From Rebecca billardiae RCC1528 (taxonomy: Eukaryota; Protista; Haptophyta), in the NCBI GenBank assembly GCA_965240325.2, contig OZ251236.1, positions 1,364,001-1,428,000 of the forward strand: DNA of 64,000 nucleotides, read 5' to 3'. The notes under the pieces were generated by a model that was not told where the DNA came from, did not search any database, and saw only the letters and a list, made by a program, of their open reading frames with translations. A program made the position numbers and the translations under genes. Numbering within the stretch: position 1 is the first letter of the stretch; the number at the start of each line of letters is the position of its first letter. This document shows, piece by piece, positions 35,858-51,378 of this stretch.

Positions 35858-37893
35858 TCAGGCTGCAAAGCTATCTGGGGTCTTGCCGACACCACCGGCC
35901 AGCGAGTGAACGGCGCGGGCGGCGTCAAGGGCGAGCTTGTCTGCGAGCTGCTGCGTCGCGGCCTCAGCGTAGATGCGCACGACGTCCTCCGTGCCCGATG
36001 GGCGGGCGAAGCAGCGCCCGCTCGGGGTTGCCGCCATCAGCCGCTCGAGCTCGGCCCGGAGTGCAGGCGGGGCGAGTACGCTCGCCTCGTCCTCGCTGCA
36101 GACGACCACCTGCGCCCGCACGCGCGCGCGCATGCCGTCGGATGTGACGGTGGCGCGAGGGCCGCGCGCAAAACTCCGGCCACGCGAGCCCACGCGCGCG
36201 TCGCGCGGGGCCGCGCGCGCCGCGCGCGCACCGTCCGGTCGGCAACCGGCAGCTTGGTCTGCCGCGAGGGCAGGTCCTCGTACAGCGCGTCCCACGCGCC
36301 CACGCCCCAGCGCAGCCGACGAAGCACGGCGTCCACGGCCAGCATGTCGCTGAGCGCGTCGCCCACGGCCTGCGCGGCGCGCGGCGCGGGGCGCGTCAGC
36401 GGCGGCGAGGGCTCGGCGCGCGGCCGCGCGGCCGTGTGCGCCCACAGCCACCGCGCACACACCTGGTTGATCAGCCTGTGCGCGGCGAGGAGCGTGCGCG
36501 CGGCGGCGGCGCGTGCCGACGCATCGCGGTCGGCGCTCGCGCCGCCCGCGCCCGCGGCGGCGACACGGGTGAGCCGCTCGAGCAGCCGCTCGGAGAAGAG
36601 CACCGTGCCATGGCCGTTCGCCTCAAAGTAGACGGCCAGGTCGAAGGCCAGCGCGCAGTGGTGCAGGAACTTGACCCCCGTCTTGGCCACGGCGATGTGC
36701 ACGCCCTGCGAGCGCAGGTACGCGCTCGATGCGCCGTTCGCGTACGCCGTCTGGACGACGGCCATCGTGGGCGCGTCGGCGTCGGCTGCGGGCGGCGTCG
36801 AGGTGCCGAGCAGCCCCGCGCGCGCCAGCTGCTCGCGCAGGAACGACGCGAGCAGCGCCGCCATCTTGTCCCCGTCCAGCAGCCGCCACTGCCCCGCCTC
36901 CCCGTACGTGTGGAAGACGACGCGGTCCGCGTCGCCGTCGAGCGAGCACGCGCGCCCGCCGGGCTCGAGCGCGGCCGCGGTGTCGAGGGAGCGCGGCGGC
37001 GTGCGCGACTTCTGGACGTGCTCCGCGCCGCACCCCGCGTTGAGCGCGCCCTCGCCGGGCCGGTTCACCACGATCAGCTCGGGCGCGGCGTCGCTGTGCC
37101 CGCCGCCGCCGCCGTGCGCGCCCTCACGCTCGTGCTCAGCGCCCAGGGCCTCGCGCAGCGCCTCGGCGAGCGGCGCAATCTTGAGCGCGCCCACGCCGCA
37201 CGCGCCGTCGACGTGCAGCGGCGTGGGCGGCGCGGCGGGCGACGAGGCGTCCGCGCGGAGCAGCTCCGCGTACGCGCCCGCGAGCATGCGGAAGTAGCCC
37301 GCTTCGCCACACCACTCTGGGCGGCCCCAGAAGCGCCCGGCTGCGGCCTCGCCGTTGGCCATGCGCACGGCGTGGTGGAGCTGCGGTGTGGTGAGCACGC
37401 CGAAGCTGGAGACCTGCGCGCCGCAGAGCTCCGCACCGCGCGACGCGAGAGCGGCGAGCCGCTCGCTGCTGGGCCGCGTGTCCCACGCGAGGAACACGCG
37501 CGGCGCCGGCTGCGCGCTCGCAGCCGCATCGGCGCTCCCGCCGATGCCCGCGAGCACAGTGGCGACCTGGTCGTCCGGTGCGTTGGCCAGCGCCTCGCAG
37601 TGCGCCTCCCAGCTCTGCGCGAGCATGCCCCCGTCCGGATCGACGAGCTTCACGCCATTGTCCGGCTCGGCATTGTGCGACGCGGTGACGACGAGGCCGA
37701 CTGCCAGCCCGAGCGTGCGCGAGCGCGCGGCCGCGAGCATGCCCATGCGCAGCAGCGTCGAGTCGAGCAGGGAGGCGCGCGTGCGGAAGCCGGCCACGCC
37801 ATAGCGCAGCTGCACGTCCTTCGGCCGCGGGAACGCGCGCGCCGCCGACGCCACGTCGACGACGCCGCTGAAGTCGAGGCCCTCCACAGCCAT
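35858..37893 (-). CDS. PGM3: Phosphoacetylglucosamine mutase; complement(join(35858..36109,36232..36369,36463..37893))
   Basis: YGVAGFR, TASHNAEPDNGVK, TTPQLHH, DGDADR, VQTAYANG, TGVKFLHH, YFEANGHGT, INQ|AVGDALSD and RPSGTEDVVRIYAEA. Two phase-0 GT-AG introns give 606 aa. Confidence 0.96.
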
Positions 37894-37939
37894 CGTGATT
37901 GGCCGGTGCTCGCCTCCGAAGGAAGCGGCCCGGCCGGCA

Positions 37940-39397
37940 ATGGCCGTGTGGCTGGCCCTCGCAGTGCTGCTGGCGTCACGCCCGGCCGCGACACCACGCA
38001 CTCTGGGCGCGCGCGCCAGCTCCGGCCAGGTCGGGGTCGGATACACCTCGCGGCGACCGCGCACGCGCCACGCGGCGCTGCTGTGCGATGGTGGAGGACG
38101 AGTCGCTGCCGCTTCGGTCGCCGACGTGCTGCGTGCCGCCGGAGTGGACGCGGCGCGCGTGCTCGAGGCAGCGCCGGAGCTGCAGCAGCTCAACGTGCGC
38201 GACGTGCGCGACTCTCTCGACTTTGTCGAGCGCTACGTCGGCGGCGCTCGGCTGCCGCAGTTCGTCCTCAAGCACCCATACGCGCTGCACTGGGCGGCGG
38301 GCGCGATTGAGAAGCTGCTGAGCGATGAGCTCGGCTGCGGCCCCGCGGAGATCTCGCGGCTGCTGCGCGGCGCGAACTTTTTGCTCGCGCCGGCGGCCAC
38401 GGACGCCGCGCTCGAGGTCGTGCGCTTCCTGCGCGACGAGCTCGAGCTCGGCGCCGAGCGCACGCGCGCGGCCGTCCTCCGGTTCCCGCGCGTGCTCACC
38501 CTCCCGGTCTCACGCGCGCACGCGGGCGGAGCGCAGGCGGCGGCGCGTGGAGGCGGCGGCGGGGCGGGCGCGGGGGCACAGCCTGTCGGCAGCACGCTGC
38601 GCGAGCGCGTCGCCTTCCTGCGCGACGCCGGCCTCACCGACCGCGGCGCGCTCGCGCGCGCGCTGTGCCGCCACCCGCAGCTGCTCGGGCTGGACGTGGC
38701 GGCCAACCTGCGCCCCACGTGCGCCTTCTACGCGGCGCTGGGCGTGCGCGTGGAGCGGCTGCTGTGCGCGCACCCGCAGGCGCTCTCGCTCAGCCTCGAG
38801 GCCAACGTCGCGCCCAAGGTCGCCTTCTGGACCTCCGTCGGCGTGCCGGACGTGGGCGCGCTCGTCTCGGCGCATCCCGTCGTGCTCTCACTCTCGCTCG
38901 CGGCCAACCTCGAGCCCAAGACGCGCTACCTGCAGGGGCTGGGCATCGGCGGGCTGGGCCGCGCGCTGCAGGCGTACCCGCAGGTGTACACGCTCTCGCT
39001 CGCCGCGAACATCGCGCCCACCGTCGAGTTCCTCCGCCGGTGCGGGTACGACGTGGGTAAGGAGCTGCGGCTGCGGCACCTGGCCGCGTCGCTGCCCAAG
39101 CGCATCGTGCCTCGGTACGAGTTGTGGCGGCGCACGCCGCCGCGCGTGGCGAGCTGGCGGCCATCGATCCCCGAGCTGTGCGTGCTCGGCACGGCCGCGT
39201 TCTGCGCGCGCCTCGGCGTCGAGCAGTCCGCGCTCGCCGAGCTCGAGCGCGCCATCGGCCCGGTGGTGCGCGAGCTCGCCAAGGTGGACCCCGACGCGCT
39301 CGTGCAAGCGTTTGCTCACGAGGAGCCCGAGTGGGAGTGGGAGGGGGACGGCCGGTCTGCGCGCGCACCGCCGAGCGAGCAGGGCGCGCCGTCGTGA
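37940..39397 (+). CDS. mTERF-family repeat protein, probably plastid-targeted
   Basis: Repeats HPQLLGLDVAANLRP, HPQALSLSLEANVAPK, HPVVLSLSLAANLEPK and YPQVYTLSLAANIAP, terminal SLPKRIVPRY. N-terminal signal peptide plus an Arg/Ser-rich segment. Confidence 0.88.
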   Translation: MAVWLALAVLLASRPAATPRTLGARASSGQVGVGYTSRRPRTRHAALLCDGGGRVAAASVADVLRAAGVDAARVLEAAPELQQLNVRDVRDSLDFVERYVGGARLPQFVLKHPYALHWAAGAIEKLLSDELGCGPAEISRLLRGANFLLAPAATDAALEVVRFLRDELELGAERTRAAVLRFPRVLTLPVSRAHAGGAQAAARGGGGGAGAGAQPVGSTLRERVAFLRDAGLTDRGALARALCRHPQLLGLDVAANLRPTCAFYAALGVRVERLLCAHPQALSLSLEANVAPKVAFWTSVGVPDVGALVSAHPVVLSLSLAANLEPKTRYLQGLGIGGLGRALQAYPQVYTLSLAANIAPTVEFLRRCGYDVGKELRLRHLAASLPKRIVPRYELWRRTPPRVASWRPSIPELCVLGTAAFCARLGVEQSALAELERAIGPVVRELAKVDPDALVQAFAHEEPEWEWEGDGRSARAPPSEQGAPS

Positions 39398-39721: not shown

Positions 39722-40540
39722 ATGGGGCCCATCCTGTGCCGCCGGCTGCGCGTGAGCTGGCTCCACCTCCTTGGCCTCACACTGCTCGTCACAGCTGTGA
39801 CGTTGGCTCTTCCTATCATGGCACGTCCGTTCAAGGGCCGCCACCCTGATGTCGTGTCAGAATATGATTCTGCTGCCGCAACATACGACACGAGGTGGCG
39901 CGTGTATGTGAATGAGACTGTGGAGCGCACCCTGCAGCTCGCGCTCCCCGCGCTGCTGGAGCTCCAATGTGGGGACGCGTGCTCTGTGATTGATGTTGGA
40001 TGCGGTACCGGGGCCTTCTCAGCCGCGCTGCGTGCGCGCTTTCCCACGTGGACGTTCAAGTGCTCCGACCCGTGTCCGCTGATGCTCGAGCGCGCAGAAG
40101 CAAAGGACCTGCACATCGTCGAGGCGCCCGCCGAGAGCTTGCCTTTCGCCGACGGTACGTTTGATCTAGCTACCAGTGTCTCGTCCTTTCATTTCTGGCG
40201 GGATCGGCGTGCTGGCCTGCGCGAGGTGGCCCGCGTGCTGAAGCCGGGTTCTGGTCTCTTCGTGGCCACTGACTGGAATGCGGATTATTTCAGCATCCGC
40301 GCCCTCAGCCGCTGGTTGCTGCTGGCAGGATACCCGGCGGAGGACGCGGATGTGCTCTCTCTGCCAATGGCGCACGACCTCATCACGAAAGCGGGCTTTG
40401 CCGTCGTACGCGCCGAATCGTACACGCTTGTGAACGGGCGCATGCGGCCCCTGGGCGCCGCTGTGCCCATCGGGCCTCGATGGGGCATGTTTACCGTGGT
40501 GGCGACGACTGCGTCTCCGCCCAGCGCCGCCGAGCTGTAG
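39722..40540 (+). CDS. Class I SAM-dependent methyltransferase (Methyltransf_11/UbiE-like) with N-terminal membrane anchor
   Basis: VIDVGCGTG, AESLPFADGTFDL, SFHFW and LREVARVLKPG. Confidence 0.9.
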   Translation: MGPILCRRLRVSWLHLLGLTLLVTAVTLALPIMARPFKGRHPDVVSEYDSAAATYDTRWRVYVNETVERTLQLALPALLELQCGDACSVIDVGCGTGAFSAALRARFPTWTFKCSDPCPLMLERAEAKDLHIVEAPAESLPFADGTFDLATSVSSFHFWRDRRAGLREVARVLKPGSGLFVATDWNADYFSIRALSRWLLLAGYPAEDADVLSLPMAHDLITKAGFAVVRAESYTLVNGRMRPLGAAVPIGPRWGMFTVVATTASPPSAAEL

Positions 40541-41096
40541 CTCATTTCTCGTATGCTGTCTTTGAATGCGCCGCTGCCCGCCATGACGATCGGCGTCGCG
40601 GACTGCGGGCGAATGGCTCATTGGCTCAATCTACGACTACGGCAGACTGACTGCGAGTAGTACTTGTACTATTATTATAAGCACTGCTAGTTTACTGCTA
40701 GCTGCTACCGGTGCGAGATTCTGTGAGCTCAGAGCAGATTTCAGAGTCCTGAGATCGATCGACTCTGCTGACATCCGCGCGGAGAGTGATGTCTGATGTG
40801 AGAAGTGACGACTGACGATGAGTCCGTTATGATGATTGATGCGCGCTCGGACTTGGCCCGGACCGGCGCCGGCCGGCAGCTGCTTATTCAGTCATCGGTG
40901 AGTGCCAGTCGGCCAGTCCGGCAGCACCCGTGCCGCGTTTCGCGAAATAACGTAGTCATCGCCGCCGCCAGTCAGCATCGGACCGGACAACCCGCGTGAT
41001 GGCACGTGTGAGTGTCATGTGACGTGATGCTGCTGCCTGCTGTCAGTGCTCGGAGTAGCTGCTCAATATCTCACTCTCTCAGTCTCTCTCTACTGT

Positions 41097-41233
<137 letters not shown>

Positions 41234-41590
41234 CTCAGCTACTGATTCTGAGTGCCGGTCGATCGTACAGCAGTAGTCATTTTCTGACGTGTGCGAGTGT
41301 GCGACGTGACTATCTACGTACGGTCTCAGTGATGATGACGACGCGTGTAAACTGTAAAAGTGACTAAACTGTGGGCCAACGGTAGTGTGGGCACCGCTTA
41401 GCGGCCGTACGCGTGTTGAGCCCCCGCGAGCCCGGGGCCGGCAGGCACCCCGTGGCCCGCAGTCGCGGACGACGACGACCCGATGCCGATGGCCGATTCG
41501 ATAGCGGATCGGATTATCGCGCGCATTGTCAGTCCGACCCCGCCTGCTGGCACGGCTTCGCACGGCTAGTATCATCATATATCAGTCAGG

Positions 41591-43834
41591 TCATCGCGAA
41601 GTCCCTGCTGCATCGTCAGCAGTGATGGGCAGCCCTTCGTGCAGCTTGAGCCGTTGGGCAAGCGCGGCCTTGTTGCCCGTCCTGGGCAGGCCGCGGCTGA
41701 CGAGCGCAGCCTTCAGCTCGCGCACGAGCATGGCGTCGATCGCTGGCGCGGAGAGCGGGGCTGTGAGTCTCGCGCCAGAGTCGTCAGCGACAGCGGCAGC
41801 TCCCGCCTCACCACGCCGCGTCGGGGCTCCACCGTCCGGCGGACCGCCGCCCTCGCTGAGCGCGAGGCGCACAAAGGCGCGGTGCAGCTCGACCATCGCG
41901 CGCGTGTCGAGCGCGCAGTACTCGAGCAGCTCCCGGCGCACGCGCTCGACAGCCTCCGCGCCCAGCTCCCCGCTGCTGAGGGAGGCGAACGCGACGGCCG
42001 CCGTGCCGCCGTCCCCGATCGCGTCCCTCGCGTACGCGCCCTCGACGTGCGGCGCGAGCGTGGGCAGGGCGACCTTGAGCGAGCTGCGCCCGCGCATGCG
42101 CGCGTGCGACACGCCGTTGCGCACGACGGGCTCGAGGTCGAGCAGCCGCGACACCACCTCGGCGCAGCGCGCGCGGTGCTCGGGGAAGAGCTCGGCCAGC
42201 TTCCGCAGCTGCGTCGCCTCGTACGGCGAGTAGACGACAATCGGACCGCTCGAGCCGAGAGCGTCGAGCAGCTGCTCGAGCAGCTCGCGCCGGCAGTCGC
42301 GCGCGCCCTCAGAGAGGTGCTCTGAGTGCTCGAGCACCCACGGGCTGGGCTGCCCGCTCGCGCCGCGCAGCGCGTCCGGCGCGAACGGGCCGCGCGCGCC
42401 GTGCGCGTCCATGTGCGCGCACGCGCGCTCGAGCACGTCCAGCATGGCCGCGGACTCGCCCTCGGGCGCAGGCGCGGCCGAGCCCGAGCCCGGGCCCGGC
42501 GCGCGTGCGCGCAGCGCGTGCAGCGAGTACTGCGTGAGTACCGTCTCGAACGGCGCGAGCGAGGGGAAGGGGGGCACGATGGAGGACGCCGCCTCGAAGT
42601 CGAGGTAGTACAGCGGCGGGCGGAGCTTGCCGAGCGCCTGCGCCAGCGGCTGGCGCGCGTCCACGTGCACGGCGGCGGCGTCGCCGCGCAGCACGGCGCG
42701 CCGGAAGCGCGCCTGCGCCGCTGTGAGCAGACGCTCAGCGTCCGCGCCCAGCGCCGCCACCTCGAGGCCGGGCGTGATCTCGGCGATCTCCTCGAAGCGG
42801 CGCTGGCTGATGCGAGGGAGCTCCCACAAGGGATGCTCCAGCCCCGCGCCGGCGCATGCATCAACCGCCGGGCAGCTCTTGCACGCCACGGCAGCGACGA
42901 CGGGTGGTGGCTCCTCGGCAGCCGTCACCGCCTCCGCCCATTCGACCGAGCCCACAGCCGCGGCGGCACTGACGGCCAGCGCGCCCTCGGCCGCACCGGC
43001 CTCCTCGCCCGGCGCCGGCGGCGCGATGACAGTGCTGATTCGCTCGAGCACCTCCTCGGTCATGTCTACCGCCGCATACAGCGGCGTCGCTCCCTCCTGC
43101 GCCGCAAGCGCGCCGCCCGCCACGTCGAGCGTCGCGCCGCGCTGCCCGGCCACCCCCAGCCGCTCTGGGTCGGTCTCCAGCCTGTACTCGGGGTTGACGG
43201 CGTACAGGTAGGCACGGCGCACCGGGAGGCCGCTCTCGCGCGCGACGTGCACGGTGAACGCCAGGTCGGGCACCTTGGCCTGCGCGTTCGAGGCGAGCAC
43301 GGACTTGACCTCAACCACGTCCCAGCCGTGCTCGCCATCGATGCTCGCGCGCTTCGGCGCGTCGAGCGCTTCGTGTGCCCTGTGCGGGTGGCCTGCCCCA
43401 CCCTCGCCGAGCGGCGGTAAGAGCACCGCGTCGGCGCGCACTATGCAGTCGTCGATACTGAAGGTGGCCTGCGCGATGGCTGTGGACACCGTCCCGTCCG
43501 CGTGCCGCGCTTGCTCGGCGTCCCAGACTCGCTCAGCCGTCTCCATGGCGGCTTCTCTCCCCGTGAGAGTACTCGGCAGCTCGACCGAGTGGACGGCGGG
43601 CAGGGCACGACCTAGCACGTACGCTTCGAAGCGCTGCCCCTGCTCGGCAAGGTGCTCCTGCTGCGCGCTCGGTGGGGGCATGTGCTGCCGGCGGCGGACG
43701 TACCAACCCAGCCTCGGGCACTTGGCCGCCGCAAGGTATGCCGCCTTGGTGAACGGGCCGGCGGGCCTAGCACACTCGACCGCCGCGGTCGCCGCGGAGA
43801 GGGACAGCAGTCTGTGCCACGCCGCCATAACCAT
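41591..43834 (-). CDS. DUF2779-type predicted nuclease (Cas4/RecB-like PD-(D/E)xK plus RNase H-like domain) with C-terminal SAP domain
   Basis: FTKAAYL..KCPRLGW, RADAV...VVEVKS, CKSCPAVDAC, PLYYLDFE..PF..QYSLH, SSLKVALP, LLEYCALDTRAM and SAP LVRELKAALVSRGLPRTGNKAALAQRL. Intronless; likely ATG 43834 or 43828. Confidence 0.85.
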   Translation of the reverse strand: MVMAAWHRLLSLSAATAAVECARPAGPFTKAAYLAAAKCPRLGWYVRRRQHMPPPSAQQEHLAEQGQRFEAYVLGRALPAVHSVELPSTLTGREAAMETAERVWDAEQARHADGTVSTAIAQATFSIDDCIVRADAVLLPPLGEGGAGHPHRAHEALDAPKRASIDGEHGWDVVEVKSVLASNAQAKVPDLAFTVHVARESGLPVRRAYLYAVNPEYRLETDPERLGVAGQRGATLDVAGGALAAQEGATPLYAAVDMTEEVLERISTVIAPPAPGEEAGAAEGALAVSAAAAVGSVEWAEAVTAAEEPPPVVAAVACKSCPAVDACAGAGLEHPLWELPRISQRRFEEIAEITPGLEVAALGADAERLLTAAQARFRRAVLRGDAAAVHVDARQPLAQALGKLRPPLYYLDFEAASSIVPPFPSLAPFETVLTQYSLHALRARAPGPGSGSAAPAPEGESAAMLDVLERACAHMDAHGARGPFAPDALRGASGQPSPWVLEHSEHLSEGARDCRRELLEQLLDALGSSGPIVVYSPYEATQLRKLAELFPEHRARCAEVVSRLLDLEPVVRNGVSHARMRGRSSLKVALPTLAPHVEGAYARDAIGDGGTAAVAFASLSSGELGAEAVERVRRELLEYCALDTRAMVELHRAFVRLALSEGGGPPDGGAPTRRGEAGAAAVADDSGARLTAPLSAPAIDAMLVRELKAALVSRGLPRTGNKAALAQRLKLHEGLPITADDAAGTSR

Positions 43835-45741
43835 GCTGGATGGAGCGACACTTTGCCGCGTTGCGAGCAGACACCGACGCCGAGCCGCTGCGGCCACCTC
43901 CCGCGCAGCGCGGCCGAGGCGCGCAGTTTTCCCCCGTGCTGGCTGCTCCTGGCCTTCTGGTTGTACTCTCCTCCGGACTGCGCCGCCATCGTACCTCGGC
44001 GAGTCGGCGGGCACAGGCGCCCAGCCCGCGTGAAGCGAGTGCGATGGCGGAGAGTACCAGCCAGTGCTCCGGCCAACGATGGCGGCGGCGCGGCGCAGCC
44101 ACCGCAACCAAAGGACCATCAAATCCGCGACGAGCTCAGGGGTCGGTCGCGGTCGCAGCGCCGCCATTCCCCGATTGGCCACCAAACCTGGACGAGGACT
44201 TCCAGGCCGCAACCACCGGTGACGGATCACTCCACATACCAGGCATCAGCTGATCAGGTGAGGTGCGCTCGCGCTCGTGAGCCTCGCAACACGTCTTGCT
44301 CGCGCGGCGATGATTACACGCATGAACGGCAAGTACACCGTGCGCCGATCAACAACGAAAATCAAAATCCATGAGCCCGCTTGGCAGCCCAACGCTGGCG
44401 TCGGGCGTTCGCTCACTTCAGCCTGCTGCTCACAATCGATCTTCCCGCCCCCTCGCCCCGTCCTGCGATCCCGCAGGCGTGGCGCAGCAGTTTGCAGATT
44501 CAGCAGCATCAAATCATCAATGCAATCCATAATCGTCCTGACTGCTGCCGGGGTACGGGACTCATCGTCCGCGCGATTGCGGTATGTTCGCTTTTTTGGC
44601 AACCGCCAAGCGCCCGCCTTGGTCGGGGCCAAGATAGCAGAGATCGACCGATTAGTTAGATCCGGGCCGCGAAGCCGTTACGGGCTTAACGAGTCTGACA
44701 TAGCCACGGTCGTGATGACCGGACCGTCCGACACTGTTACTACTACCGCAGTGATCAGCTGTAATCGGCCATCCCCGCCCGCTTCCTTATGATTAGTTAG
44801 ACAATGATGATTCTTTGTTATTGTCAATCACGTATCCATCCGTTGCTGTTGCCAATAACGCCAAATACTTGTGTCAGGCGTATTGCCGTACGTGGATGAT
44901 GGCAACCCAATCTAGATACTTATTCAATCACAATTTCTTTGTTCAGCTGTATTGCCGCCGTCGCGTAGTATGGGTCGGTTGAGTTGCCGTTGCGCATCTT
45001 GCCATTGATTGGCTTGGATTCGCCACCGCCGGCGTGCGCGGCGTGCCCTTAGTGAGAGTCGAGTGAGCAGGCCGAGCTGATCCCAGGTAATCTAGGCTAC
45101 TGGTACAGTCCGTAAAAAAGTGATACGTTGCTCTGAACGACGGCGCGCTCACAGTTGAATGTCGTCGTCGTCGTTGGGAGCAGCGGGCGCATCGCTCAAT
45201 GCTGACAATGACAATGACAAGAGAGAATATCAGCACGATACGACACCGTCGACGACCGGACGTTCCGCCGTTAGTGCGGGTCATCACCGTATTAATAATA
45301 GATAGTCAGGAAGTCATACTAGTTAAGTGCATGCGTAAGTAGCTATCATCAACGGCGATCGATCTAAGTCCGGACACCGAACGTGATATATACGTACATA
45401 ATAGCGTCATTATATATTCCGAGCCCGCGCTCCCGTCTTAGGCCTTAGCGCATCCACAGATTGAGATTAGCAGTAGCAGAAGTCTGCTACATCTGTCATC
45501 ACTCACATCAGCCAATCGGCGCAGGGCTGATGATGACAACATCGCTGCCACGATCGGTGCATGGTCAGACCGTGCGGCCGGCAGGCCCAGCAGCCGCTCG
45601 AGGCCTGCCGAGTGCGCGCCAATTCTAACTAGAACTTTGCCAACGAGTATCAGTACGCGTGATGAAGACTCAGGATGAGAGCCAATTATTAATATATATC
45701 AACAGCACCGTCAATAATAGTTTTCAGCGAGCAGCATCAGA

Positions 45742-46575
45742 TCAGGAGGCGAGGCAGTTCGGCGGCTTAACAATCCACCAAGCTGGCCATTCATAGCAAT
45801 CATACGACCACGTCACATGCACGGTGGCGAAGTGAGAGCGTGCGAAATCTTGGAGCGCTGAGATCACTCCCCAGCGACTCCCAGGATTGTAAGGAACGCG
45901 ACCAACAATTGCCCCCTTCCCTGCAGTCTTCATGGGAAGTATCTTGTTCTGGTAGCGCTCCTTCGTAATATACTCGGTATCCTTAATGTCCCCATAGTCG
46001 TCACCGCTCAGCAACCCGCCCTCACGCAGCTTGGGCCACCACGCGCTAAGGTCCTTGGTGAGCGCATCGTGTGTGTGCAGAGCATCGATGTACAGCCAGT
46101 CAAAGTATCCGTCAGGGAACTGGGAGGCGGCGTCTGCCGAAAGAGCGCGCACCATCGTGTAGCGCGAAGCGTTTCCATTCACTGCGCGGTCAATCGCCCT
46201 CTCGGCCATCGCCATCACATCCATGTTTATCCGGTCATCCCTGAAGTTCTTGTCGGGAGGGTCACCCGGTCGCCAGGCCCACGCGTCGATCGCGTAGTAG
46301 TGGCCGAGCCAGTGCTTGACGTTCTTGGCAGAAAATTCTCCTCGGAAGACTCCAATCTCCGCAGCCCGGCCCGTGCGGAAGAAATGCCGCTGCGCCATCG
46401 CGGCAAAATCATCGCGGCACGGAGGTACTGCGAGAGAACTCGCAAAGCGCATGTGCTCAGAGACCTCAGCAAAGCACGCGGCTGCTTCGCTCTTGCCTTG
46501 CGCGCCGGACGCTATTCCCACTGCAGTCCATCTTACGAGCAGCCGCAGCCAGCACGAGCGCCCCGCGCGTGACAT
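45742..46575 (-). CDS. Class I SAM methyltransferase (Methyltransf_24-like) with signal/anchor peptide
   Basis: AEIGVFRGEFS, AIDAW and FPDGYFDWLYIDALHT..DLSAWWPKLREGGLLSGDDY. Confidence 0.9.
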   Translation of the reverse strand: MSRAGRSCWLRLLVRWTAVGIASGAQGKSEAAACFAEVSEHMRFASSLAVPPCRDDFAAMAQRHFFRTGRAAEIGVFRGEFSAKNVKHWLGHYYAIDAWAWRPGDPPDKNFRDDRINMDVMAMAERAIDRAVNGNASRYTMVRALSADAASQFPDGYFDWLYIDALHTHDALTKDLSAWWPKLREGGLLSGDDYGDIKDTEYITKERYQNKILPMKTAGKGAIVGRVPYNPGSRWGVISALQDFARSHFATVHVTWSYDCYEWPAWWIVKPPNCLAS

Positions 46576-46790
46576 GGCTGCTCTCACAGTCAGCTTCTCT
46601 CCCGCCACGACGCCGACGACGGCAAGGGTGGTCCCGGGCGGGCGACGACGGCAAGGGCGGTGCCGACACCCGGCCAGAGCCTAGCTGTAGAGTTAGATTC
46701 CACCCGTGACCCGTCCCGGACCGCGATGACGGGCATCGGCCCAGATAGTATGGCCAGATTTCTGCTGAGATTGAGGTGACGTACAGTTTA

Positions 46791-47434: not shown

Positions 47435-49984
47435 TCAATGTCGCTCGCCATCGTCCACCTGCTTGATGTCGACGTCAGCACTGACACCGAAGAAGAGCGC
47501 GCGGCCGCCATCCAGCACGTCCAGGTCGCCGCTCATGTGCGCCACGCGCGCGCTCATCACGACGGGCTCCGCCTCGGGCCACAGGTTGAACGTCTCCTCC
47601 TCCTGCATCGGCGGCATCGAGTACACGCCCACCAGCACCATGTTCAGCCGCTCGCGCAGGTGCTCGTTGAGCAGCTTCTCGACCTTCTTCTTGACCGGGC
47701 CGAATCGCGAGAGCACGTCCTTGACGCCGTACTCGAGCACGCGCGGGTCGGCGAAGCGGTGCCACAGCTCGACGTTCGACGCGGTCAGCTCGCGCACGTC
47801 GACGCTCAGGCTGAGCTCGTCCTCGCTCGGCGCTCGGCACCACTCGCCGTCCTCCCGGCGCAGCGTCTCGATCAGCCCCGCGAGCTTCTCCGGGATGCTC
47901 CCCGGCCCCCACAGCTGGAACGGGCCGTGCGCACTCACGTCGATGGCCGTGCTGCCGTCGCCGGTGACGCTCAGCACGTCGAGCGAGTCGTCCCACTCCG
48001 CACTGAGGAGCTCCGGGCGCCTGCCGTCCGCCTCGGAAGCGGACGCGTCGCGCGTGCGGGCGGCCTCCGCCTCGTCAGCCGCCTGCACGATCGCTTCGGA
48101 CATCTCGAGCCGCGCCTGAGCCGCACGCCTGCTTGTGCTCGGGCACACGATCAGAAAGATCACGCAGCCCAAGCACACGAGAGCCGCGACCAGCCGGACC
48201 GGGAGCAATGGCTGCCGGACGAGGGCGACGACAGCGCGGCCCCGGCCGGAGCCGACGGGCGCACCGGTCGGTGGCGGCGCTCCACGGGTCCCCGTGCTGG
48301 CCTCCGCGTCGCCGCTTGCTTTGGGCTGCGAGCCGAAGCGACGTGCGCACGCGGGCACGAAGCTCGCCACGAGCGCCACGAGCGCGCACAGGGCCAGCAC
48401 CCAGTAGGAGACCACCAGGGGGCCGGTGCAGCACGGCGCGCTCGGCACGCCCGCCGCGTCGACGTACCCGATGTCGGCGCGCATCCCAAAGTCGGCCGCC
48501 ATGCGCAGCAGGGTGGCGTTGGCGCACGTTGGGCTGGGGATGCTCGAGAAGTGCAGCTGCGGCGCGCGCGTCGCGACGAACCGCGTTGACAGCATCCAGC
48601 GCGCCGAGTGGTAGTTGACGTAGTAGAGAGCGTGCCGCAGCCGCTGCAGCACGTCAGACTCTGAGCCAGCGGGCCGTGGCATCCGCGGCACCTCCACGTA
48701 CAAGGCGCCGGACTGGTAGAGCACGGCGAGGGCGACATTGAGGATGTCCGCCGAGCCGAACAGCTGCAGCGCGTGCGCGCGCGCCTGCGCGCTCGCGCTG
48801 TGCAACGCCGCCTTGTTCAGCGGCGGCGCGCCCCATCGCCGCACGACCTCGAGCTCAGCGCCCGCGTGCGTGTCGCCCAGCGCCGCGTGCCCGCGCACCT
48901 CCGACATGTACGCGTTGAAGAACAGCGCAAGGTAGTGCTCGCCGTCGGGCCGAGAGACGACGCTCGCGGGCTCCGACGCGCCGTACGTGAGCACGAACGG
49001 CATCCCCTCGACGATCGGGATGCCCTGCACCGCCGACGCCTGCGCGGAGTTCTCGTTGACGCTGTCAAACGCTGCGCCCATGTGCTCACACAGCATCGAG
49101 CGCACCTCCGACGCGATCGCCTGCTTGAGCGGCTCCTCCACCAGGCGCAGGATGAACTGCTCCGCCGGCGCGGCGTCGGGCAGCGAGATGTGCAGCTGCT
49201 CCATCCGCACGTCGCAGCCGCTCTCGCGCAGCTGGTAGCAGCCAAGCTCGGCCGCGCGCGCGCCCGCCGCGCGCTGCTCGGCCGCCGAGCCGAGCTGGCA
49301 TGGGCTGGCGTAGTCAATGTCGACCGAGACGGCGATGCCGACGTCACGCGCACTGACGGAGACGCGCGTGGTATCCTCGATGCGGATGAAGAACGTCTGC
49401 CACGCATGAGCCATGGCGCCGAACTCGAGCCCCAGGCCCCGCCCCGGGGTGGTCATGACAGTCGCTCGTGCTCCGGTGCCGCCATCGCCCGCCGACAGCA
49501 CGACGCGCATGGGGCCCTCGAGCCACAGGTTGATCCACTGGTCGTGGAGCTCCCAGTTCGAGCCGCGCATTTGCGGCAGGCCGCGCTCGGAGATGGAGTG
49601 CAACACCACGGGGAAGAGCTGCGAGATCGTCTGCGTGAGCGTCGACTCGCGCACCATCGCGGCGCCGGTGGTGCTGTCCGGCGTTGTGGGTGTGGGGCTG
49701 GGCAGGCCGTCGGAGGGCGAGCCGCCGTGAGACGGGCCGTGTGCGGTTGTCAGAGCCACGATGAGCACGACCAACGCCACGACGACCACGCAACACAGAG
49801 AGCCGCCGCAGTACAGTGCGCACTGATCGGTTCTGCCCGCCGGGGCTGCCGTTGCCTCCGCCTCTAAGGCTGCCGCGCCTGGAGCCGCGTCATGGGTGTC
49901 GGCAGGCGCCTTGGCGCCTTCTGGGTCCAGTTCGCTCCATGCGTGCTCGCGATCGGGCGTCACCCGGCTGCCGCACGCCCCCAT
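47435..49984 (-). CDS. BPI/LBP/CETP (TULIP) fold membrane protein with three predicted TM helices
   Basis: MGACGS start and Cys-rich TM. BPI1-like GCDVRMEQLHISL...FILRLVEEPLKQAIASEVRSMLCEHM; BPI2-like FGSADILNVALAVLYQSGAL. Confidence 0.72.
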   Translation of the reverse strand: MGACGSRVTPDREHAWSELDPEGAKAPADTHDAAPGAAALEAEATAAPAGRTDQCALYCGGSLCCVVVVALVVLIVALTTAHGPSHGGSPSDGLPSPTPTTPDSTTGAAMVRESTLTQTISQLFPVVLHSISERGLPQMRGSNWELHDQWINLWLEGPMRVVLSAGDGGTGARATVMTTPGRGLGLEFGAMAHAWQTFFIRIEDTTRVSVSARDVGIAVSVDIDYASPCQLGSAAEQRAAGARAAELGCYQLRESGCDVRMEQLHISLPDAAPAEQFILRLVEEPLKQAIASEVRSMLCEHMGAAFDSVNENSAQASAVQGIPIVEGMPFVLTYGASEPASVVSRPDGEHYLALFFNAYMSEVRGHAALGDTHAGAELEVVRRWGAPPLNKAALHSASAQARAHALQLFGSADILNVALAVLYQSGALYVEVPRMPRPAGSESDVLQRLRHALYYVNYHSARWMLSTRFVATRAPQLHFSSIPSPTCANATLLRMAADFGMRADIGYVDAAGVPSAPCCTGPLVVSYWVLALCALVALVASFVPACARRFGSQPKASGDAEASTGTRGAPPPTGAPVGSGRGRAVVALVRQPLLPVRLVAALVCLGCVIFLIVCPSTSRRAAQARLEMSEAIVQAADEAEAARTRDASASEADGRRPELLSAEWDDSLDVLSVTGDGSTAIDVSAHGPFQLWGPGSIPEKLAGLIETLRREDGEWCRAPSEDELSLSVDVRELTASNVELWHRFADPRVLEYGVKDVLSRFGPVKKKVEKLLNEHLRERLNMVLVGVYSMPPMQEEETFNLWPEAEPVVMSARVAHMSGDLDVLDGGRALFFGVSADVDIKQVDDGERH

Positions 49985-50040
49985 CGGCACGCGAGGACGC
50001 GATCGACGCGCGCCCGCGACCTCGAAAAGCGAGCGGGCGC

Positions 50041-51378
50041 GATTAGTTAGTCCGGCTTGAGGACCTTGGTTGTATAACCGCTCGGTTATGCGGGTATAAC
50101 TCACCGGTAGCCCTCATGAGGGCGGGCTGGCAGCCAGGGTCCGGCTGCCTGGAGGTTTTCCGGTCGTCAAGCCGAGCCAGGCCCGGATTGGGCGCGGGTC
50201 TGGATTTGCTCAGCAGCTGCTCAGCAAGCGATGCGCGTCTGGGTGCGGCCGCGCTCGCTGGCTGCACCTGCGGCGCTGCGGCCGGCGTGGCTGCTCTGGT
50301 CACCGCTGCGCTGGTGGCTGCTCCTCCTCTGGGAGTTGTTTCTTCCAGGTGCGTGTGCGTCGGCGGTAGGCCGCCCTCAGCCCTCGCTCTCTCCACTCGT
50401 GCACCTGCCCTGCTTGCTCTCTGCTTTCGATGGGGGCGCCTCGGAGCCGCTTCGAGGCGTCCCCGTCTGCAATCTTCTCATGCTCTATCTGCTTTCGATG
50501 GGGGCGCCTCGGAACCGCTTCGAGGCGTCCCCGTCTGCAATCTATCTTCTCATGCTCTGCTTTCGATGGGGGTGCCTCGGAACCGCTTCGAGGCGTCCCC
50601 GTCTGCAATCCTCTCATGCTCTGCTTTCGATGGGGGCACCTCGGAACCGCTTCGAGGCGTCCCCGTCTGCAATCTTCTCATGCTCTGCTTTCGATGGGGG
50701 CGCCTGGGAACCGCTCCCAGGCGTCCCCGTCTGCAATCTTCTCACGCTTCGCAGTCTCGCTTGCCTTCATCGCCTGGCGGGTGGGTGCTGCTCTCTCCTT
50801 CTCTGCCTCCTCCTCTGCAGTCTGCCGTGCACTGCTGTGTGTGGGATGCGACCTGCTACCTTATCTGACGCTACGCGTGCGTGTCTCGCGCCTGCTTCCC
50901 CCCTGCGCCGCCGCCGCCGCGCATGTCTTCGTGCCCACTGTCGCATGCCGTCTGGATCGTCCTTACTCATACAACCCTGCGGGGAGCCCCTCTGGGCCTC
51001 TGCCGCCTTCGGTCCTCGCGCTACCCCTTCGGCGGCCTCGGCCTCTTCGGGCCCCCGGCCACCACCCCTGCGGGGTGTGGCATTCCACACCTCCTTCTGG
51101 GTGGAGGCCCTCGAGGCCTCTGCCTCCTGGGGCGCCGCGCTCTGCCCAAACTTGCGTTGGGGGGGGGGGGGGGGGGGGGCGTCGGCTGCCAGCGCCTGCG
51201 GTCTACGTGCTCCATCGAGTACTTCCTCTTCGGCGTCTAGGCGGTCATCGGCTTCTGTCGGCGTAGTTGCTCGAATGCATCGGCGAGTCCTTCCTGGTCG
51301 GCGTCGCATCCTGGACGGCTTCGGGGGTGTGACCTAGTCACCTCACGCGTTTATCAACGCGGCCCCCACCTCAATCTA
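50041..51378. mobile_element. Unclassified insertion-like segment rich in hairpins, running into the assembly gap
   Basis: Abrupt compositional change at gattagttag (CTAACTAA on the minus strand), several short inverted repeats at 50075-50150, an internal tandem array and a poly-G tract. No recognisable transposase or RT. Confidence 0.4.
50419..50747 (+). repeat. Five tandem 64-bp units, each containing a 17-bp stem-loop
   Basis: Unit ctctgctttc-gatgggggcgcctcgga-accgc-ttcgaggcgtccccgtc-tgcaatcttctcatg. Confidence 0.93.

Follow-up and report, generated by a model that had tools for sequence, protein, structure and literature searches.

The nuclease gene and its product

We analysed a stretch of 64,000 nucleotides (the window) from the haptophyte Rebecca billardiae RCC1528 (assembly GCA_965240325.2, contig OZ251236.1, positions 1,364,001 to 1,428,000), in which one copy of a minus-strand gene encodes a 747-residue protein that joins a Cas4/RecB-like nuclease domain, a DUF2779 exonuclease domain and a C-terminal SAP domain. 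The gene runs from an ATG at 43834 to a stop at 41591-41593. The gene and the parts of its product, with coordinates in the window, are as follows.

41591..43834, minus strand: complete intronless coding sequence, 747 codons and a stop, from the open reading frame (ORF) list, the translation and the coding GC periodicity
43757..43834, minus strand: N-terminal extension, residues 1-26, a possible targeting peptide with no prokaryotic counterpart in the alignments; predicted local distance difference test score (pLDDT) <50
42839..43756, minus strand: Cas4/RecB-like PD-(D/E)xK nuclease domain, residues 27-332, by fold matches and conserved D135/E175/K177
43718..43720, minus strand: Cys39, the first presumed 4Fe-4S ligand, invariant in the alignments
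42854..42883, minus strand: CKSCPAVDAC (C318-x2-C321-x5-C327), the other three presumed Fe-S ligands, invariant in four alignments; translation checked
42632..42838, minus strand: helical linker, residues 333-401, with WELPR...LT..Q motifs, conserved in the alignment and confidently modelled
41846..42631, minus strand: DUF2779 proper, a DEDDy-type RNase H-like 3'-5' exonuclease domain, residues 402-663, by Pfam, fold matches and invariant residues
41744..41845, minus strand: disordered Gly/Ala/Pro-rich linker, residues 664-697, pLDDT 30-45, variable in the alignment
41639..41743, minus strand: SAP domain, residues 698-732, by Pfam, matches to SAP domains in the PDB and the model

GC at codon positions 1/2/3 of the coding sequence is 0.78/0.55/0.88, which is a strong coding signature. 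The frame stays open for 132 further codons upstream (43835-44230, minus strand), including an ATG at 44166. We rejected the longer N-terminus that this ATG would give, because the upstream stretch shows no codon periodicity in its GC content (0.74/0.67/0.68) and the orthologues begin where M1 does; the start at 43834 therefore stands, and 43835-44230 is probably 5' untranslated or intergenic sequence. A public contig (L088) is 100% identical to window positions 41202-43992, and its 3' end falls within a downstream (GA)n microsatellite. This (CT)n/(GA)n dinucleotide repeat, at 41090-41276, comprises about 90 units and lies about 300 bp downstream of the nuclease stop.

Domain architecture and catalytic residues

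In Pfam the protein matches DUF2779 with 85.5 bits against a cut-off of 23.3 (E 4.7e-24) and SAP (PF02037) with 30.5 bits against 23.9 (E 2.6e-7). When the family profile was compared with solved structures, the SAP stretch also matched the SAP domains 1zrj (6.2e-5) and 2kvu (1.9e-4), and the comparison returned no other relative. A first-pass annotation, made from the sequence alone, had read the gene as a DUF2779-type dual nuclease with a Cas4-like cysteine set and a C-terminal SAP motif. This reading is borne out by the Pfam matches, by residue conservation and by fold matches, and the motifs quoted in its favour are all present where it put them: KCPR (C39), RAD (D135), EVKS (E175/K177), CKSCPAVDAC (C318/C321/C327), YLDFE (D412/E414) and YCALD (Y639/D643). 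The annotation had named a DUF2779/Cas4-like profile match as a check; the DUF2779 half is clear, but the window protein scores too low for the Cas4 family (TIGR00372, 12.3 bits; cut-off 65). Its Pfam search gave no Cas_Cas4 (PF01930) match, and in NCBIfam both Cas4 and the RecB-like TM0106 family were matched below threshold only. The PADLOC Cas4 profile matched two homologues at 1.5e-8 (P0031) and 4.3e-5 (P0021), and the window protein at 1.5e-3.

Conservation was scored residue by residue in 20 homologues from eukaryotes and prokaryotes. Ten residues are invariant (C39, C318, C321, C327, D412, E414, E539, D566, Y639 and D643), and the PD-(D/E)xK triad D135, E175 and K177 is conserved in at least 90% of the sequences. 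The four cysteines bracket the nuclease core as one residue plus C-x2-C-x5-C, which is the spacing of the 4Fe-4S ligands in Cas4 SSO0001. In the C-terminal nuclease the DEDDy-type residues D412, E414, E539, Y639 and D643 are kept, with the Exo I (DxE) and Exo III (Yx3D) motifs present; the acidic residue of Exo II, E539, is a Glu within a Y-S-x-[FY]-E motif and was assigned by alignment alone. With the catalytic and cluster residues all intact, both nucleases should be active. Two homologues, P0023 from Amorphochlora amoebiformis and P0053 (locus L007, 603-2225), retain the four cysteines and the DEDDy residues and have lost E175 and K177, together with D135 in P0053; judged by these substitutions, their Cas4-like domain may be catalytically dead.

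Between and within the domains the protein is less uniform. The Cas4/RecB-like domain contains disordered, lineage-specific inserts, and the exonuclease domain carries a Pavlovales-specific insert at about 444-498. The helical linker (333-401) has no Pfam match even at E 10, and its assignment as a helix-hairpin-helix was dropped for lack of such support.

Predicted structures

The AlphaFold2 model of the whole protein (pLDDT 77.5, predicted template modelling score (pTM) 0.71) shows three folded parts and the helical linker. A separate model of the N-domain, residues 22-402, built from a 36-sequence alignment, reached pLDDT 85.3 and pTM 0.84. Foldseek with the 747-residue model returned weak E-values only, 1e-2 or worse, whereas VIA-align gave clear domain matches. 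Residues 23-332 of the whole model match Cas4 with Z 11.3 for 7mi4_A (188 residues, root-mean-square deviation 4.3) and Z 10.0 for 4ic1. An exhaustive VIA-align run of the N-domain model against all 48,161 PDB representatives likewise gave Cas4 (Z 10.0 for 7mi4_A, 8.8 for 4ic1, and 8.7), as well as human MGME1 (5zyu, 9.0), RecE (9.0), the AdnAB nuclease (8.5) and EXO5 (8.3), and lower down AddB (7.3), lambda exonuclease (7.3) and Dna2 (7.2). Nearly all of its top 20 matches belong to the RecB/Cas4/lambda-exonuclease class, with unrelated folds starting below about Z 5.

Residues 402-663 match the 3'-5' exonuclease domains of Pol alpha (Z 13.5), Pol epsilon (11.1) and DnaQ (10.4), as well as ExoI (10.1), TREX1 and RNase T (both 9.5). 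Both nuclease assignments thus have sequence conservation as well as fold behind them. The SAP domain is modelled as a helix-turn-helix (pLDDT 82-90) with helices at 704-713 and 722-732.

Relatives and phylogeny

A word search with the whole protein was dominated by Ala-rich words and gave only 9 matches (with the single protein, and also with a 15-sequence profile). The informative searches were a region-restricted search and an exhaustive HMMER search over 1.84 billion cluster representatives; genome contigs were scanned with the C-domain alignment. HMMER found DUF2779 matches in 3,824 clusters (50% identity) at E <=0.001 and in 139 at E <=1e-30. The family is overwhelmingly prokaryotic both in this search and in the trees, as the first-pass annotation had supposed.

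The window protein nevertheless has relatives in other eukaryotes. The best named one is a hypothetical protein of Pavlovales sp. CCMP2436 (BLASTP, 41% identity over 96% of the query), whose gene has at least two introns. Homologues annotated as 'SAP domain-containing protein' occur in the bolidophytes Triparma strigata and T. verrucosa, and the orthologue of the chlorarachniophyte Amorphochlora amoebiformis is spread in more than 20 exons over 24.9 kb. Two diplonemids, Namystynia karyoxenos and Artemidia motanka, add further relatives, as do an MMETSP transcript, a Tara Oceans contig on which the neighbouring genes are eukaryote-type, and eukaryote-like contigs. The nearest eukaryotic relatives are 41-49% identical to the window protein, against about 35-40% for the best prokaryotic ones.

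We built a maximum-likelihood tree from 65 rows and 487 columns (LG+C20+F+G4, posterior mean site frequency approximation; supports are ultrafast bootstrap/SH-aLRT). The 15 eukaryotic sequences recovered all fall into a single clade (support 100/100), and a quick tree of 135 rows concurs. This clade is nested within a prokaryotic subfamily that shares C-P-T-x-G-W and CxxC signatures. The bacteria in the subfamily are Planctomycetota (Caulifigura, Phycisphaerae), Latescibacterota, Gemmatimonadota, Nitrospirota and Elusimicrobiota; the archaea are Methanoregulaceae, Methanomicrobiales, Theionarchaea and the Asgard Candidatus Borrarchaeum (L010, L011, L014, L015, L031). The sister node of the eukaryotic clade is weakly supported (56/37), and therefore no donor phylum can be named. 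Elsewhere in the subfamily, one Methanoregulaceae copy pairs tightly with a deltaproteobacterial copy (support 100), which suggests that transfer between domains has been frequent.

The strong support for the eukaryotic clade and the introns in orthologues indicate that any transfer is old or was followed by spread among eukaryotes. Horizontal acquisition, proposed in the first-pass annotation, thus holds in so far as the eukaryotic sequences nest within one prokaryotic subfamily, but the event was not private to this alga. A recent transfer into it alone is at odds with the data, which fit one ancient acquisition followed either by differential loss or by spread from eukaryote to eukaryote. 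DUF2779 homologues also occur on 21 viral contigs in IMG/VR, where they are prokaryote-type and do not fall near the eukaryotic clade; a viral vector behind the patchy distribution was rejected on these grounds. On one of the viral contigs, the 55-kb IMGVR_UViG_3300032737_000190 (L096/L106), there are two distinct DUF2779 homologues, with about 17 kb between them.

Distribution of the SAP fusion

A survey of the SAP fusion, which the first-pass annotation had proposed, found it in each of the five Pavlovales-type sequences, in P0010, which is their sister, and in Triparma, and in no other eukaryotic member or prokaryotic member examined. A crude motif scan, the only one made, found no SAP exon downstream of the SAP-less relatives at L003, L004 and L007. 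On the best tree this distribution needs two changes. A constrained tree uniting all SAP-bearers, a group defined after the tree had been seen, was not rejected (approximately unbiased test, p-AU 0.147), and the fusion may have arisen in one event or in two.

The surroundings of the gene

The window is taken to be nuclear DNA of a Pavlovales-type haptophyte, and the neighbours of the nuclease gene include eukaryote-type genes, namely a phosphoacetylglucosamine mutase and two methyltransferases; one unannotated ORF is listed with them:

39722-40540, plus strand: class I S-adenosylmethionine (SAM)-methyltransferase (Methyltransf_11/25, E 3e-21), one of two flanking the nuclease gene
45745-46608, minus strand: class I SAM-methyltransferase (Methyltransf_24, E 1.6e-16), unrelated to the one at 39722-40540
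36040-38193, minus strand: AMG1-type phosphoacetylglucosamine mutase (AMG1_III E 3e-40, PGM_PMM_I 8e-17)
47438-50104, minus strand: 889-codon ORF, otherwise unannotated, with a sub-threshold LBP/BPI/CETP N-terminal match (E 0.009)

The mutase is an ordinary eukaryotic housekeeping gene. The window also holds an ORF of 6,474 codons. GC in 2-kb windows ranges from 55 to 87%, and GC3 is host-like; at this GC content long spurious ORFs, such as the frame left open upstream of the nuclease start, are to be expected.

Among ten prokaryotic flanking genes checked we found neither a conserved operon nor cas genes; the neighbours vary from locus to locus and are mostly of housekeeping type.

N-terminal leader and proposed location

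Leader length was measured ahead of the first conserved residue, K30. Prokaryotic members have 4-8 residues there and eukaryotic members 20-65, apart from Amorphochlora (8) and P0053 (13). Arg, Ser and Ala are common in the eukaryotic leaders, which are basic and contain few acidic residues. A hydrophobic core is missing from the leaders of Triparma, the Tara contig, P0014 and the diplonemids (best 9-residue Kyte-Doolittle (KD) value <=1.2), and the diplonemids, though plastid-less, carry an Arg-rich leader of the classic type. The absence of a hydrophobic core argues against signal peptides and, together with the plastid-less diplonemids, favours mitochondrial presequences. The first-pass annotation had pointed to a short possible targeting peptide in the window protein. 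An N-terminal extension does exist, but it begins MVMAAWH... and is only weakly targeting-like.

From these leaders we take the mitochondrion to be the leading candidate for the location of the window protein, a view we hold with about as much doubt as confidence; nucleus or cytosol together would be a distinctly less probable answer, and the plastid an improbable one. The organellar role raised in the first-pass annotation is plausible in view of the leaders. DUF2779, Cas4 and RecB go unmentioned in the diplonemid and Euglena mitochondrial proteome papers and supplements consulted.

A proposed function in trimming DNA ends

We propose that the gene encodes a member of a eukaryotic DUF2779 clade, a SAP-tailed double nuclease that would trim DNA ends, most likely in the mitochondrion; taken as a whole, with its activity, substrate, place and role, this proposal seems to us about evenly balanced between right and wrong. 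End trimming is proposed because nucleases of the RecB/Cas4/MGME1/EXO5 class act on the ends of single-stranded DNA and DEDDy domains remove 3' nucleotides. The SAP domain and the linker would hold the enzyme on DNA, the Cas4-like domain would thread and cut 5' single-stranded ends, and the DEDDy domain would take off 3' ends. The net effect would be that both strands are trimmed or degraded, whether at DNA ends, at flaps or on linear fragments. Inside an organelle the enzyme might thus process intermediates of replication and recombination, or clear linear DNA. The mitochondrion would be its most likely workplace, given the basic, acid-poor leaders found across the eukaryotic clade, plastid-less diplonemids included. 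There, one protein could stand in place of what elsewhere is MGME1 or EXO5 plus a polymerase exonuclease.

More speculatively, the whole eukaryotic clade might represent an enzyme of organelle-genome maintenance that has so far gone unrecognised, with an MGME1/EXO5-like Fe-S nuclease for 5' ends and a proofreading-type 3'-5' exonuclease on one chain. It would have come from prokaryotes a single time, been kept only in scattered protists (haptophytes, bolidophytes, chlorarachniophytes, diplonemids), and process or clear linear mitochondrial DNA ends, with SAP as a later nucleoid tether in some lineages. We regard this wider picture as possible, and rather doubtful as a complete account.

Alternative explanations

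Several observations weigh against a mitochondrial end-trimming enzyme. The leader of the window protein itself is short and only weakly basic (2 Arg and 1 Glu in 26 residues), and Amorphochlora and P0053 have next to no leader. SAP domains are mostly found in nuclear proteins and are typical of those in DNA repair and chromatin; the nearest solved SAP matches of this protein are nuclear as well. In the DEDD set the third acidic position holds a Glu, placed by alignment only, and our full-text literature searches found no experimental work on any DUF2779 member, in agreement with the first-pass description of the family as uncharacterised. A Leishmania infantum protein annotated as DUF2779, and related to ours by that annotation only, is listed under 'cytoplasm', not mitochondrion, in a database annotation (PMC12464055, Table 3). 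Much of this would suit the same enzyme working in the nucleus as a DNA-end resection or repair nuclease, with SAP as a chromatin tether and a leader that is not a targeting peptide. However, most eukaryotic members have a leader directly ahead of the first conserved residue and the prokaryotic homologues have none; most of the clade lacks SAP, which therefore cannot define the ancestral workplace; and on reading the sequence we saw no obvious basic nuclear-localisation cluster, although no dedicated test was made. We consider the nuclear explanation a serious one that is nonetheless unlikely to be correct. A plastid enzyme, with the leader as a bipartite complex-plastid signal and plastid DNA as its charge, would account for an LLSVA/F or LLSVV/F motif in three of the five Pavlovales sequences that resembles a plastid-type cleavage site (complex plastids use a signal-cleavage site followed by Phe), and for 9-residue KD values of 2.3-2.5 in P0004 and P0010. 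The window protein, however, lacks the Phe and has a weak hydrophobic core (KD 1.6), and neither the coreless leaders of Triparma, the Tara contig and P0014 nor the classic leader of the diplonemids fits a plastid signal, which makes this explanation very unlikely.

The remaining two alternatives concern role and origin. A nuclease that destroys foreign (viral) DNA, retained from a prokaryotic immune role, would agree with the Cas4-like N-domain, with an AbiEii-like toxin beside one prokaryotic homologue, with the 21 viral contigs, and with a 2026 paper that files a mycoplasma DUF2779 protein under 'immunity connections' (PMC13621843). Yet PADLOC defence-system models were unmatched apart from weak Cas4 hits, the ten prokaryotic flanking genes examined vary between loci and are mostly of housekeeping type, the viral-contig homologues lie away from the eukaryotic clade, and the eukaryotic gene is single-copy in the window amid ordinary genes. 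The defence role raised in the first-pass annotation thus found no support, and we think it improbable. Contamination with bacterial DNA, or a bacterial gene inserted very recently and not at work in the host, might be suspected from a mostly prokaryotic family and the lack of introns here. This is effectively refuted by the eukaryote-type genes surrounding the locus, by the tree and by the introns of orthologues; GC3 is host-like, the closest relatives are eukaryotic, and SAP and leader are eukaryotic additions. We give this explanation almost no weight, and the SAP-tailed end-trimming nuclease remains our preferred account.

Implications

DUF2779 is a large family across bacteria and archaea with two different exonucleases predicted on each chain, an arrangement suggesting that the two strands of a DNA end are processed in concert. 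The eukaryotic branch, monophyletic and equipped with targeting-like leaders and, in some lineages, SAP, offers a tractable entry to the role of the family. Some protists might maintain organelle DNA with a toolkit unlike the MGME1, EXO5 and DNA2 of animals and yeast. The scatter of the gene over four eukaryotic supergroups also makes it a clean case for weighing ancient transfer against differential loss.

Comparison with known systems

Cas4 (SSO0001, 4IC1; Cas4-Cas1, 7MI4; type I-C, 8D3L) is the best structural match of residues 23-332 (Z 8.7-11.3), sharing the N-terminal Cys, the C-x2-C-x5-C at the domain end and the D...E-x-K triad; the window protein differs in falling below the family thresholds, in lacking a CRISPR context (its neighbours are methyltransferases and other eukaryote-type genes) and in having a second nuclease fused to it. 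MGME1 and EXO5, the eukaryotic mitochondrial and nuclear RecB-type exonucleases of single-stranded DNA, are of the same fold class (Z 9.0 and 8.3), and EXO5 has an Fe-S cluster of the Cas4 type. In the maintenance of organelle genomes they work on DNA ends, a role that by analogy the window protein might have, but they have no detectable sequence relationship to it and are single nucleases without a DEDD domain or SAP. DnaQ-like DEDD exonucleases (family B polymerase domains, Pol III epsilon, ExoI, TREX1, RNase T) share the fold of residues 402-663 (Z 9.5-13.5), with DxE, Yx3D and a third acidic residue. In the window protein this third residue is a Glu by alignment, there is no polymerase, and the domain contains a large insert specific to the lineage.

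A parallel fusion of a Cas4/RecB-like domain to an RNase H-like exonuclease is found in COG2251/TM0106 (TIGR03491; PF13482 RNase_H_2 plus a RecB-like domain; PMC3985635). The window protein matches it weakly (E 0.006) and P0031 matches PF13482 at 4.2e-4, but with 15.6 bits against a cut-off of 97.45 it belongs to a different family, which is likewise uncharacterised. Within DUF2779 itself (PF11074) the likeness is complete in plan: an N-terminal DUF83/Cas4-like PD-(D/E)xK domain and a C-terminal DEDD(y) exonuclease with the same catalytic residues. Majorek et al. (2014) assigned DUF2779 (RNase H-like family F.17) to the clade of 3'-5' exonucleases within the RNase H-like superfamily and noted its co-occurrence with the DUF83 PD-(D/E)xK domain (PMC3985635), and the 2026 paper reads mycoplasma MMSYN1_0389 as a double nuclease, Cas4-like and DEDD(y), that has only two of the four cysteines (PMC13621843); the window protein keeps all four. 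The dual-nuclease reading of DUF2779 is therefore already published. What is new here is a eukaryotic, leader-bearing, SAP-fused variant of this known, uncharacterised family, encoded by a nuclear gene and set apart from its prokaryotic relatives by its leader, its lineage-specific inserts and its C-terminal SAP domain.

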